A stretch of DNA of 60,084 nt, counting the filler, from Dugesia japonica (lineage: Eukaryota), in NCBI GenBank assembly GCA_001938525.1. It is 5 parts of 5 records of this genome, joined end to end, with 100 filler letters (N's around TTAATTAATTAA, not from the genome) between each part and the next. Parts side by side here need not be neighbours in the genome. Positions count along the whole stretch, not along the records: positions 49,737 to 60,084 come from MQRL01635834.1; 4 more parts are not named here. One strand, 5' to 3'. Shown piece after piece: positions 56,958 through 60,084 of this stretch. The notes under the pieces were generated by a model. It was given only the letters and a program-made list of their open reading frames with translations, did not search any database and had not been told where the DNA came from. Every line of letters begins with the position of its first letter. Positions within the stretch are counted from its first letter, which is position 1. Made by a program: the position numbers and the translations under genes.

Positions 56958-59721
56958 GTAATATTATTAATAATAATATTGATAATTACATGCCAGAAGT
57001 CCTTTTCTCATCACACGACCATAAAATTAACAAAGACAAAATCATTACCCAAAAAATAATATTAAATATTAAATAATTACCAAGTAAATTTTTGATAGAC
57101 ATATAATTTATATTGAATAAGTTCATAAATAATGTTCAATAAACCTATCGGTAATATTCAAGAAATCAATACTCAATAAATTCGTAATCAGTATTCATAA
57201 TACTCAATAAATTCGTAATCAGTATTCATAATACTCAATAAATTCGTAATCAGTATTCATAATANNNNNNNNNNNNNNNNNNNNNNNNNNNNNNNNNNNN
57301 NNNNNNNNNNNNNNNNNNNNNNNNNNNNNNNNNNNNNNNNNNNNNNNNNNNNNNNNNNNNNNNNNNNNNNNNNNNNNNNNNNNNNNNNNTCAATAAATTC
57401 GTAATCAGTATTCATAATATTCAATAAATTCGTAATCAGTATTCATAATATTCAATAAATTCGTAATCAGTATTCATAATATTCAATAAATTCGTAATCA
57501 GTATTCAATAATTTTTCAAATTCACAATGAAAGTTAATTAATTAATTAATTAATTGTAAGTTAATAAATACATCAAATGATAATAAATCTTTATGAAAAG
57601 TCTCACCATATCTCTAAGTGTTTTCTCTGTATCTTTCCTAACATTGATCAGTCTACATGGATCACAAGGACAGTGACGATAAGGGCAAGATTTTTTGTGA
57701 TTTTTCCATATTACAGTTACATTGTGATTTCTACATCGACGACAATGTGGTCCCATTCCAGCATCTTTATCAGACACATTTGTTTTAACTGAAGATGAAC
57801 CCCTTAGTCGGTACTCTTTAAAACTAGTCAATCTCTGATCTTGTGTGTCACTGTGCCTTTCTTCAGCTCCAACATGTCTCTGATCACGATACAGAGCGAT
57901 TTGTTTTGCCACAACCTGAAAATAAGGCATCAATTAAATTGATCTATTAGTGTTATAAATCAATCAATGAAAAAGGATGGCTAATGAATAACAAGTGGTC
58001 ATCACCAGAGTTCATGCACATTTTTGCTGCGAGCTCGCAAGCATCTCGGCATGAAGTCCGCTACATATTTATTAATTTATGCCCTCTGCAACATGCATGA
58101 ACCAGATATCGGACTCATATGAACAGCAGTTCGCTACTCTGTTGACACCGCACCTCATTACTGTGGTTGTGTAGCTAAATCATTGAAAGTGGGTGGCCGG
58201 TAAATGATTTATTATATGCTAGCGAATGTTGAGAACTCATCACCACCAATTTATCACTTCGTTATATATGTAAAATTTAACAATCACTGCAGTTCCTGCT
58301 ATATGCTGTATGTTATTTGTTATATTATATATGTTATATATAAACTATAATTATAACTTTTCTTCCTTGATCAACTAAGAGGCACTTGATGCATTTACAA
58401 TGCAAATATAGACAAGTTCTTTTATGCCTCTTAACTGGAACTAGTTTGCCATGAACTTTACATTTCCGGCACATGTAGGATGCTCTTGATATGGCTTGAT
58501 CTCCACCAATAGCGCTGGCAGATTCTGAACCCTGTTGATAGACATTTGTCAACTGAGACAATTCTGGTCGTACGATTCTGAAATAATATTAAAAATATCA
58601 ACACTAAATAATAATAATAATAATGATAATAATAATAATAATGATAATAATAATAATAATAAATGAATCATCTTTGTAAACAATGGGAACGCAGTCGCCA
58701 GCTATATGTTATTGCTACATCGCGCCTACCAAGCACAAGAAATTCATATAACTATGTTCCAGATCTAGGATTAATTGAAGAAATCGAATTGTTACACAAG
58801 TCTATCATCTCATATCAATGAAACTGATGAAATAAATAAATATCGCTACATTTGGCTATAAGGGATGGTAAAGATGGACGAGGTAGATTGTCCAGTGATG
58901 ATGATACAGTAGGGGAGGCGTAATTGGCTCAATACTGGGTTAGATTTTATTACAAATGACTTTCGGAGACTTTCTCTCATGTGTCTGCTGATACATGCAA
59001 GATGTGGTGAATGCAGGAGGCAGACGAGATTTGTGTGCTAGCCATTACAGGAGAATTAAATGCAAAGAGAGCTGGCAATAAGAATTAAATGACATCCTTC
59101 TAATGTAGGAATCCAATTGTCTGAGATCGATGTTTATGGTATAATATAGAATAAGTGGTTAAATTGATGTGAGTCTTGTTTTATTCTGGAGAAATTGATT
59201 AATTTGTTGGAATTATCGTGAGAAATGAATGAAATTTATTACTAGCAGAGATTCCATGATTACCATGTTAACAAATTTTATCGAAAATTCTCGAATAGTG
59301 TTTTGTCACTGGACCTGCCAATATGAATAATTGATCAATATATCGATCGATAGATCCACCAATAAATCCATCAATAAATATATGAATAGATCTATTAATA
59401 AATCTACCAATAGATATATCAATATATCGATCGATAGATCCATCAATAGATTCATCAATAAATTCATCAATATATCTATCAATATATCGATCGATAGATC
59501 CATCAATAGATCTACAAATAGATCGATCAATAAATTCGTCCATCAAATATCCAATCTGATTCATATGATTATCCCATCGAAACGAATCCTCAATACTTTT
59601 CCTCGAACAATAAACACAACAAAACCAAACGCAAAACAATTTCCAAAACGGAATCAACATCATTATTTTATCGCTAAATAGAAATTGCAATCAAATGAAT
59701 AACTTACGTTTCTAACTTCAT
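49935..59721 (-). CDS. dmrt: doublesex/mab-3-related transcription factor with two tandem DM domains (possibly the flatworm dmd-1 type)
   Basis: Phase-consistent model: 59721-59708 (MKLE+AC, in-frame upstream stop), 58577-58358, 57915-57607, 50889-50610, 50194-49973/49935. DM1 is YMCRKCKVHG..VKRHKRTCLYLHCKCIKCLLVDQGRK|VVAKQIALYRDQ. DM2 is PHCRRCRNHN..WKNHKKSCPYRHCPCDPCRLI. Confidence 0.9.
50610..50889 (-). CDS. Dmrt gene Ser/Pro/Tyr-rich exon
   Basis: ttttag|CAAATT (phase 0) to |gtgaga (phase 1), 280 nt open: QIVADESNCSSRSKNSYHTYPGYSQ..MMEKPNFDLYPR..GDLSHLA. Confidence 0.7.
53040..55130 (-). mobile_element. Penelope-like element remnant (RT C-terminus + GIY-YIG endonuclease) split by a hAT insertion
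   Basis: YVDDIF..FLNFMNCFHRNIIFTIEME....SFLDILI (54890-55117) and LVYKYECNGCNATYIGETYRHLCTRIQE (53070-53160). Ends near a (TAA)n tract. Confidence 0.9.
53194..54434 (+). mobile_element. internally deleted hAT element with CGGBP-like N-terminus and perfect TSD
   Basis: TIR TAGGGCATCC / GGTTGCCCTA; perfect 8-bp TSD CTTATTAC on both sides. FTEKVVDAFLSADIPFYKLRN and CPPTPITVERSFSMLKKLL motifs. Confidence 0.93.
55880..55960. repeat. 22-23-bp AT-rich tandem repeat
   Basis: atttatataataattacaaa.. x~4. Confidence 0.8.
56650..56785. mobile_element. inverted pair of Penelope-type terminal fragments with hammerhead remnants (hairpin)
   Basis: agattaatttgatatttcgacttt ... aaagtcgaaatatcaaattaatct, a perfect 24-bp inverted arm. 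Same family as 36650-36745 (shared tttgatc.a.gctttta...taaatgaa tail). Confidence 0.7.
56783..56955. repeat. (TAA)n microsatellite with internal gap
   Basis: Trinucleotide run. Confidence 0.97.
57165..57510. repeat. 31-bp minisatellite in a Dmrt intron
   Basis: (c/t)tcaataaattcgtaatcagtattcataata, period 31 (57172, 57203, 57234), continuing past an N gap. Confidence 0.95.
57607..57915 (-). CDS. dmrt: Dmrt exon: DM1 recognition helix, linker and DM2
   Basis: ttttcag|GTTGTG ... ATG|gtgaga; 309 nt, phase 0/0; CxxCxxH..H...C....CxC..C. Confidence 0.95.
58358..58577 (-). CDS. dmrt: Dmrt exon: DM1 zinc module
   Basis: tttcag|A ATC ... AAA|gttata; 220 nt; CRKCKVH..HKRTC....CKC..C. Confidence 0.95.
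59325..59545. repeat. degenerate 12-bp-period repeat (TCcATCAATAgA) with ATCGAT palindromes
   Basis: Reiterated tccatcaataaa / tctatcaatata / tcgatcgataga units. Explains the spurious ORFs here. Confidence 0.85.
59708..59721 (-). CDS. probable first coding exon segment of the Dmrt gene (MKLE-T)
   Basis: ATG AAG TTA GAA AC|gtaagt; phase 2 fits the next exon. In-frame TAA upstream; acceptor ttttcag at ~59904. Confidence 0.65.
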
Positions 59722-60084
59722 TGTGCTACGTCGAATTTTTGTTATATGCGATCGTTACTTTGTTACGAAACAGTGCTGGAACTCAACTTGGTCTGATAAT
59801 TACTGTTGAATCTAAATGGATCATTAATAACTCTCAACTGCTACTATTCGGACCGGTTTCTTGTTCCTAGTGACAGTGTATCGAAATTATGAATGATACG
59901 CCGCTGAAAATTGCTACTTTTAATACACAGCTATAATACATGCTATAATTTTGCTGGGACATTGACGCGCTGTTGTCTCATTGGTTGATGGTTTGTTTAA
60001 TAATTTTACTGAAATTTCATTGGATGCTGCCAACTAGCTCATGGAGATAGTAAAAATCAATATTTTGCTATATACAACTAACTA

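Follow-up and report, generated by a model that had tools for sequence, protein, structure and literature searches.

A candidate DM-type site in the putative 5′ UTR of a tandem DM-domain gene of Dugesia japonica

Introduction

Does the gene for a flatworm protein with two DM domains carry, within its own 5′ region, the binding sites through which its product could regulate it? To our knowledge DM-domain genes are the sole class of sex regulators common to animals, and we know of almost nothing about their control outside vertebrates, flies and nematodes; a literature search found no study of cis-regulation in a flatworm DM gene. The locus considered here lies in a stretch of 60,084 nt of Dugesia japonica DNA, filler included (assembly GCA_001938525.1; hereafter the window), of which positions 49,737 to 60,084 come from MQRL01635834.1. 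A sequence-only reading had proposed that positions 57990-59920 contain a cluster of DM- and MAB-3-like sites making up an autoregulatory module, which could lock in a sexual or male cell state. We find that these positions cover the ordinary 5′ portion of a pan-flatworm gene, which lies on the minus strand and encodes a protein with two DM domains. The region appears to hold at most one credible DM-responsive element, at 59754-59767 within the putative 5′ UTR.

Results

Structure and relatives of the gene

A Pfam profile search places two copies of PF00751 in a single protein, with E=2.3e-11 for the first DM domain (DM1) and E=7.6e-14 for the second (DM2); in the orthologues too, both domains fall within one annotated or spliced product. 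Exon 2 (58358-58577, minus strand) encodes the zinc module of DM1, and exon 3 (57607-57915, minus strand) encodes the recognition-helix tail of DM1, the linker and DM2. Between them is intron 2 (57916-58357, minus strand), which is richer in G+C; subsequent searches and scans omitted or masked positions 58309-58352 within it. An intron following (D/E)QGRK (DQGRK here) is common to seven flatworm loci. In the spliced orthologue L006 the alignment of DM1 with DMRT1 (4YJ0) is gapless through the recognition helix. By sequence comparison DM1 has a DMRT1-like recognition helix, while the tail of DM2 has diverged.

For exon 1 and the 5′ UTR the gene model is a prediction. The candidate coding end of exon 1 (59708-59721, minus strand) comprises an ATG and a further 11 nt and runs into a GTAAGT donor, and its intron phase agrees with the acceptor before 58577. 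A short first coding exon with the same phase is found in two cestodes (L002, 995-1002; L010, annotated start 10001). Putative intron 1 would then occupy 58578-59707 on the minus strand, its donor and acceptor both being read from the sequence. Upstream of the putative transcription start there is a candidate CCAAT box at 59980-59984, with a TATA-like element, TATTAAAAG, about 59 nt downstream of it at 59917-59925, both on the minus strand. The earlier description of a 5′ UTR and two introns agrees with our independent reading, and the enrichment in G+C that it reported is borne out (0.29-0.40 over 57737-59986, vs 0.15-0.28 over 51000-57500).

Orthologous loci were needed for a test of conservation, and were therefore sought with HMMER. 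The nearest relatives are all flatworm proteins, from Hymenolepis, Mesocestoides, Fasciola, Paragonimus, Cichlidogyrus and Schistosoma, with no congener of D. japonica among them. They are distant, the best full-length protein being at 73% and the longer matches at no more than 76% identity over the matched stretches; identities of 79-85% are confined to short fragments of DM2 only. Neither an exact-product look-up with the exon 3 ORF nor a search for words of the DM1 exon gave a match, and other word searches returned distant flatworm fragments only. Homology gave no tie between the ORFs at 49938-50889 and the tandem-DM gene, and Pfam did not confirm our impression of Penelope-like or hAT-like fragments at 52984-55400.

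Putative intron 1 has further contents. A minisatellite of about 16.6 copies of the 12-nt unit ATCAATAGATCC lies at 59334-59532; miRNA-like Rfam matches within it were sub-threshold, and we set them aside as repeat artefacts. Adjacent to this is a G+C-richer block (58680-59330), of whose words a fraction of 0.52-0.99 is present in 19 small contig sets from seven studies, sets tentatively classed as RNA. The same sets contain a smaller share of the words from the rest of 57550-60084, and the block is apparently transcribed. No Rfam family scored above threshold in the 5′ region, this block included, RNA folding gave no excess of structure on either strand of the block, and no copies of the 5′ blocks were found elsewhere in the piece.

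DM-like motifs in the 5′ region

The four strings on which the proposed cluster was based are all present (59870-59882, 59754-59766, 58133-58145 and, on the minus strand, 58840-58852), as are the half-sites GCTACA, GATACA and GCAACA. Their fit to the loose pattern GNNACANTGTNNC is uneven, being exact for 59870-59882 but with one mismatch at 59754 and two at 58133. Matrices for DMRT1 and DSX were built from published SELEX sites, using shuffled sequence as the control. The site at 59870-59882 (GTGACAGTGTATC) has G as its central base, a position at which DMRT1 and DSX sites carry A or T (PMC1931443). It is a weak DM-like match, scoring 7.6 on the DMRT1 matrix (SELEX-like sites for DMRT1 have their 1st percentile above this) and 6.2 on that for DSX (1st-5th percentile of DSX SELEX-like sites). 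The string at 58133-58145 (GCTACTCTGTTGA, two mismatches to consensus) scores 4.4 and 5.0 respectively, and is a chance-level match.

The sequence AATGTAGCGATAT at 58840-58852 (minus strand, i.e. the sense strand of the gene) does match the asymmetric MAB-3 consensus AATGTTGCGA(T/A)NT at 12 of 13 positions, as had been claimed (consensus of Yi and Zarkower 1999, as quoted in PMC6736625 and PMC1931443). No match to it is exact, however, and the mismatches fall inside the TGTTGC core. Two matches were absent from the earlier reading. One, AATGTTGAGAACT, also agrees with the MAB-3 consensus at 12 of 13 positions and lies at 58225-58237 on the plus strand, antisense to the gene; the other is ATAACTATGTTCC at 58748-58760, which is exact to the DSX consensus RNNACWAWGTNNY and marginal, scoring 7.2 on the DSX matrix.

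The best candidate is CGTAACAAAGTAAC, at 59754-59767 on the sense strand of the gene (minus strand), within the putative 5′ UTR and 33-46 nt ahead of the candidate ATG. It matches the DSX consensus RNNACWAWGTNNY and scores 12.3 bits on the DSX matrix, where SELEX-like sites have a mean of 13.8 and a 5th percentile of 8.0, and only 7.3 on the DMRT1 matrix. This DSX score has P=0.033 within 59708-60084 and, as the best score within about 2 kb, P=0.08-0.11; the P values for this site and for its link to cestodes discussed below (0.006-0.1) were obtained after trying several matrices and region definitions. The site is a direct repeat of GTAAC with a core of ACAAAGT rather than the canonical ACA(A/T)TGT. 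The variant is the only DSX core in 57990-59920, where the canonical core does not occur (0 vs 0.5 expected), nor any 13-bp inverted repeat built around it with a central A/T.

Density of sites against chance

The comparison with shuffled sequence depends upon how a site is defined, consensus strings and half-sites being in excess but the SELEX matrices giving P values of 0.08-0.5. The best DMRT1 score is 7.8 of a possible 22.9 bits, compared with a mean maximum of 7.7 in the shuffles (P=0.44), so that every site scored lies below the 1st percentile of SELEX-like sites (10.3). Counts on the DSX matrix (n≥6) are 4 vs 2.2 expected (P=0.21). Apart from 59754-59767, scores for the quoted sites run from 4.4 to 7.6 bits, no better than the lower limit of the SELEX range, and on the DSX matrix all other sites are at the bottom of the range (5.0-7.2).

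By contrast, the union of the three consensus strings gives 5 matches vs 0.78 expected (P=0.0015) in a test that was defined post hoc, compared with 16 vs about 22 in eight control regions. Two matches to the MAB-3 consensus with no more than one mismatch were observed where 0.05 would be expected. Half-sites of the form G[ACT][AT]ACA are enriched about twofold (12 vs 5.6 expected; P~0.02, or 0.06 over 57916-60084), and the enrichment is confined to the 5′ end, the ratio in the remainder of the piece being 1.0. An excess of consensus strings can nevertheless arise without regulatory meaning, because the codons of exon 3 alone yield one: 3 matches vs 0.32 expected, with two ACA(A/T)TGT cores where GPHCR and NHNVT are encoded. 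We read the cluster as mostly weak consensus look-alikes that are no more informative than chance, although, given the consensus-string excess (P~0.002), we may be discounting too many of the weak sites.

Conservation in flatworm orthologues

Two cestode loci are identical over 32 nt (L002, 839-870; L010, 9825-9856), within promoter and 5′ UTR sequence whose identity elsewhere is 55%; after this block, the longest stretch without a difference has 11 nt and falls at the start codon and donor. The 32-nt block is located 145-176 nt before the annotated ATG in H. diminuta, and includes GTAACATTGTTTC, a canonical DM site that scores 13-14 on the DMRT1 matrix and 13.4-13.8 on that for DSX. A second conserved stretch 30 nt upstream of the block, TGTAACAA, is a DM half-site. 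The site at 59754-59767 has the words TCGTAACA and GTAACGA in common with the cestode block, collinear and on the sense strand. The link has P=0.006 within 59708-60084 and P=0.034 within 58577-60084, and the likeness consists of these two short words, local alignment of the window with the block giving nothing at the reporting threshold.

Evidence of conservation among these distant flatworms is mixed: there are words shared with the cestode block, but in Schistocephalus solidus neither the 3 kb or so ahead of the DM1 exon nor the intron after it holds a comparable site. Comparison of the window with the orthologous loci by blastn gave no non-coding similarity beyond a 13-mer, GCCAAATGTAGCG (58844-58856), which recurs upstream on the sense strand in L001 and L002 (E=0.38) and is absent from the S. 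solidus locus. The maximum DSX scores in the 5′ regions of seven orthologues have P=0.11, 0.05, 0.99, 0.03, 0.47, 0.14 and 0.13, giving about 0.02 in a Fisher combination, while matched control regions all have P≥0.25. An unbiased comparison of shared 7-mers in the 5′ regions of six species did not single out DM-like words.

Discussion

Interpretation of the putative 5′ UTR site

The site at 59754-59767 alone gains independent support, because it has a typical DSX score and shares words with the cestode block. We tentatively favour a reading in which the 5′ region is otherwise ordinary, and this site corresponds to a DM-site block under strong constraint at the matching place in cestode orthologues. 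A DM-domain protein would bind there and tune transcription. It might be the product of the gene itself, binding through the DMRT1-like recognition helix of DM1, or that of a paralogue, so that auto- or cross-regulation through the putative 5′ UTR site is possible. Homology of the element and its binding by a DM protein are inferences from sequence, and the regulation could be of either sign.

There is a serious possibility that every DM-like match, 59754-59767 included, has arisen by chance in a G+C-richer and partly transcribed 5′ region on which no DM protein acts. The DMRT1 maximum that does not stand out from the shuffles, the unremarkable DSX counts and the lack of ACAWTGT cores are all as expected from this, and there is nothing comparable in S. 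solidus, in Fasciola or in the unbiased k-mer comparison; the three matches supplied by exon 3 codons show how readily such strings appear. It is less easily reconciled with the union of consensus strings, set against no excess in the eight control regions, with half-site enrichment restricted to the 5′ end, or with the words in common with a perfectly conserved cestode block. Were several sites in the 5′ UTR and introns 1 and 2 to act together, as the sequence-only reading envisaged, binding of the gene's own tandem-DM protein could lock a cell state. The near-consensus strings and half-sites are indeed in excess only in the 5′ 2 kb of the gene, the asymmetric site of the C. elegans tandem-DM protein MAB-3 is matched twice at 12 of 13 positions, the 13-mer GCCAAATGTAGCG is also upstream of the gene in L001 and L002, and self-regulation of Dmrt genes has a precedent (PMC2820524). 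We consider this improbable, given the low matrix scores, tests defined post hoc, a MAB-3 specificity that is not simply transferable to the flatworm protein, and a 13-mer with E=0.38 that lies in another part of the gene in the cestode and is missing in S. solidus. The precedent is moreover a negative loop, with no lock-in. What stands of the module is a tandem-DM gene with one credible candidate site; its multi-site character is unsupported, three of the four sites scoring at the foot of the SELEX range or lower.

Alternatively, the element conserved in the 5′ UTR, together with the site in the window that may correspond to it, might act through another transcription factor, or in the mRNA leader upon translation or stability. 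Conservation in the cestodes extends over 32 nt, far beyond the 13 nt of a DM site, and probably lies in a transcribed leader, and what the window and the block share is GTAAC direct repeats and no palindrome. Yet the core of the block is a near-ideal DM site with a DM half-site, TGTAACAA, 30 nt upstream, and by inspection the direct repeats form no hairpin, so we give little credence to such a role. Under the preferred reading, of a DM protein bound at 59754-59767, it is conceivable, if rather unlikely, that a DM-responsive 5′ UTR or promoter element is ancient in flatworms and marks a conserved auto- or cross-regulatory loop of DM genes in sexual development. The element would then be common to this AT-rich flatworm and to tapeworms, with the 32-nt cestode block as its best-preserved form.

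Should the 5′ UTR element prove genuine, it provides a short entry to the regulation of flatworm DM genes, in a 14-nt site and a 32-nt tapeworm block, and would be relevant to parasites whose sexual maturation is a target for control. If it is not, the locus exemplifies how loose consensus matching can manufacture a ‘cluster’ in an AT-rich genome.

Comparison with known systems

MAB-3 of C. elegans is likewise a two-DM-domain protein, and the window has two 12/13 matches to its site. It belongs to another phylum, however, and a nematode consensus may not apply to a flatworm protein. The canonical recognition helix of MAB-3 is in its second DM domain, whereas here it is in the first, which is why its specificity is not simply transferable.

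The 13-bp pseudopalindrome of DSX and DMRT1 (Murphy et al. 2007, PMC1931443) provides a closer comparison for 59754-59767, which fits the DSX consensus with a typical score. Cores of the ACAAAGT type are found in 7 of 57 selected DSX sites and in none of 22 selected DMRT1 sites (SELEX sets, PMC1931443); 59870-59882 departs from the central A/T rule.

Medaka dmrt1bY is also a DM gene whose own proximal regulatory region includes a DM-type site. There a Dmrt1 site mediates self- and cross-regulation with negative feedback (Herpin et al. 2010, PMC2820524); it is transposon-derived, was validated by EMSA and reporter assays, and mediates down-regulation (PMC2820524). A single site suffices in medaka, and it was found by a SELEX-derived matrix approach as used here. 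Its core is ACAATG and it scores 12.3 on the DMRT1 matrix, unlike the window sites, which reach at most 7.8 and are candidates from sequence alone. Closer in phylogeny is Smed-dmd-1, a flatworm DM-domain gene like that described here, whose family has been linked to the development of males in both planarians and schistosomes (Chong et al. 2013, PMC3674237).

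The gene and its 5' end

Two minus-strand exons encode the DM domains. That at 58358-58577 carries the zinc module of DM1 (Pfam DM, E=2.3e-11), while that at 57607-57915 carries the DM1 recognition-helix tail, the linker and DM2 (Pfam DM, E=7.6e-14). The intervening intron (57916-58357, minus strand) splits DM1 after DQGRK, and this split is present in every genomic orthologue fetched, i.e. Logan flatworm contigs L001/L002 and L003, and loci of Schistocephalus solidus (L007), Hymenolepis diminuta (L010), Fasciola gigantica (L011), Schistosoma turkestanicum (L012) and Cichlidogyrus casuarinus (L013). 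The best full-length relatives among 1.8 billion representative proteins were flatworm proteins without exception. From these two observations the gene is judged to be a pan-flatworm tandem-DM gene. DM1 of the spliced orthologue L006 gives an ungapped alignment with human DMRT1 (PDB 4YJ0) that extends through the recognition helix; the alignment of its DM2 with DSX is limited to the zinc module, and the DM2 tail diverges. We note that the S. solidus annotation (L007 7219-8174 and 10001-11772) cuts the tandem-DM gene into two models, one per DM domain.

There is no in-frame ATG before the conserved SRASY-MCRKC stretch of exon 2, and a tttcag acceptor lies at 58578-58580, so that an upstream coding exon is needed. 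A candidate is found at 59708-59721 (minus strand), where ATG plus 11 nt is followed by GTAAGT in the phase that the acceptor requires. The same arrangement is present in two cestodes. In L002 positions 995-1002 read ATGGATCG, followed by the donor GTAAGC, and at the annotated start codon of H. diminuta (L010:10001) the eight coding letters are identical to those of L002 and are followed by GT. Upstream of the candidate exon, on the minus strand, lie a TATA-like element (59917-59925) and a CCAAT (59980-59984). The sequence-only reading had spoken of the 5' UTR and first two introns, consistent with the gene model inferred here from sequence. Positions 58309-58352 were excluded from subsequent searches and scans.

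Just downstream of exon 3 (57150-57510), the large intron contains tandem copies of a unit of some 30 nt, tcaataaattcgtaatcagtattcataata, broken by a run of N, and (AAT)n arrays lie on both sides of another N run (56780-56960). ORF fragments in 52984-55400 may resemble a GIY-YIG/Penelope-like element (minus strand) and an hAT C-terminal region (plus strand, 54081-54275); a Pfam search of these fragments found nothing. At 49938-51026, some 6.6 kb further downstream than exon 3, the minus strand carries ORFs of higher G+C with many S, N, P and H residues, which are possible 3' exons of the DM gene. Comparison with the L001 C-terminal exon showed no similarity, and no Pfam family was matched.

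DM-like motifs and their density

Each of the four motifs on which a cluster of DM/MAB-3-like sites had been proposed is present at the position given for it, but they differ in quality. Only that at 59870-59882 matches GNNACANTGTNNC exactly, with G as its central base. Selected DMRT1 and DSX sites are inverted repeats centred on A/T, and replacing a single base by one that was not selected lowers binding (PMC1931443). The motif at 59754-59766 differs from GNNACANTGTNNC at one position and agrees with the DSX consensus RNNACWAWGTNNY; that at 58133-58145 differs from GNNACANTGTNNC at two. The minus-strand motif at 58840-58852 matches the MAB-3 consensus, which had been quoted correctly (PMC6736625), at 12 of 13 positions.

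Count matrices were built by hand from published selected sites (DMRT1, n=22; DSX, n=57; Additional file 1 of PMC1931443), and dinucleotide-preserving shuffles of the region gave the chance baseline. On the DMRT1 matrix the best score in the region was 7.8 of 22.9 bits, against a mean shuffle maximum of 7.7 (P=0.44). The quoted sites scored 7.6, 7.3 and 4.4, below the 10.3 that marks the 1st percentile of sites drawn from the matrix; a validated medaka site scored 12.3. On the DSX matrix 59754-59767 scored 12.3, near the SELEX-like mean of 13.8 (P=0.08-0.11 over about 2 kb; P=0.033 within 59708-60084), and the remaining sites 5.0-7.2. The ACA(A/T)TGT core does not occur within 57990-59920 (0.5 expected). 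The sole canonical cores near the 5' end are two in the DM2 coding sequence of exon 3, at 57716-57728 (NHNVT codons) and 57739-57751 (GPHCR codons), the latter recurring in L003 and L004 through conservation of the coding sequence.

String tests, defined post hoc after the data had been seen, gave 12 half-sites G[ACT][AT]ACA against 5.6 (P about 0.02; the remaining 7.7 kb of the piece has a ratio of 1.0), 2 sites within one mismatch of the MAB-3 consensus against 0.05 expected, and 5 loci against 0.78 for the union of three literature consensus strings (P=0.0015). The GATACA/GCTACA pair ranked in the top 1.3-2% among comparable hexamer pairs. Eight control regions for the union test, from this piece and orthologous loci, summed to 16 against about 22 expected, and in the adjacent 57400-57989 one string test gave 3 against 0.32, with all three matches in coding exon 3. 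On the matrix and string outcomes together with the exon 3 matches, low-information look-alikes are nominally in excess, but selected-like sites are not, except for the single site in the putative 5' UTR (59754-59767).

An apparently transcribed block

Most of the piece is AT-rich (15-28% G+C), rising to 29-40% at about 57700-60000. A G+C-richer block at 58680-59330, inside the inferred intron 1, contains the MAB-3-like site and four half-sites. Nineteen small contig sets, from 7 studies and guessed by software to be RNA, each contain between 0.52 and 0.99 of its words, and these sets cover it more completely than the rest of 57550-60084. Candidate identities for the block are an alternative first exon, intron retention, an independent non-coding transcript and a repeat of recent origin; no Rfam family was matched, and neither excess folding nor a long ORF was seen. 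Transcription would be a simpler explanation of its higher G+C than a binding-site cluster. A partly palindromic minisatellite at 59334-59532, with about 16.6 copies of the 12-nt unit ATCAATAGATCC, gives sub-threshold miRNA-like Rfam hits.

Comparison across flatworms

Word searches and the search of 1.8 billion representative proteins found no close relatives, and ordinary footprinting is impossible because only distant orthologues were found. The useful distant comparison sets H. diminuta against L001/L002, which come from a cestode-like flatworm showing 64% identity with Mesocestoides corti in exon 3. Their non-coding sequences align in the promoter/5' UTR and one 36-nt intron block, and nowhere else. 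Within the promoter alignment, elsewhere 55% identical, 32 nt are perfectly identical (L002:839-870 and L010:9825-9856, also L001:471-502), the next longest such run (11 nt) lying at the start codon and donor. This block, 145-176 nt before the annotated H. diminuta ATG, holds the canonical DM site GTAACATTGTTTC, scoring 13-14 bits on both matrices, and then GTAACGA; a further DM half-site is present 30 nt upstream, in a second stretch of conserved sequence. The block is a strong candidate for a DM-responsive element in tapeworms.

Two words, TCGTAACA and GTAACGA, are common to the site at 59754-59767 and the cestode block; their order and sense-strand orientation agree, as does their location within the gene (chained-word score 15; P=0.006 in 59708-60084, P=0.034 in 58577-60084). 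For the DSX-matrix maximum, seven orthologous 5' regions gave P = 0.11, 0.05, 0.99, 0.03, 0.47, 0.14 and 0.13 (Fisher combination about 0.02), and matched control regions all gave P >= 0.25. The 13-mer GCCAAATGTAGCG, at 58844-58856 overlapping the MAB-3-like site, recurs on the sense strand at L001:54-66 and L002:422-434. It is the best non-repeat match between the upstream region of the window and the other loci (E=0.38). In the cestode, however, it occupies a different part of the gene, and S. solidus lacks it.

The most likely reading, which we hold tentatively, is that the region is the ordinary 5' end of a gene and that 59754-59767 would be a real DM-type site for auto- or cross-regulation, the remaining matches being noise. 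That every DM-like match is noise, 59754-59767 included, is nearly as likely. The words shared with the cestode block speak for conservation of this site, but neither the roughly 3 kb upstream of the S. solidus DM1 exon nor the next intron contains a comparable DM site, the Fasciola 5' region is unremarkable for the DSX-matrix maximum, and an unbiased test of 7-mers common to six species did not single out DM-like words. The multi-site autoregulatory lock of the sequence-only reading has the nominal string excess in its favor and the DMRT1 matrix result against it; it is possible, poorly supported and, in our estimation, improbable.

A medaka Dmrt gene is documented to regulate itself through a single promoter site (PMC2820524), so an element of this kind, even if real, would not be without precedent. 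The self-regulation in medaka is negative in sign, whereas that proposed here was a lock.
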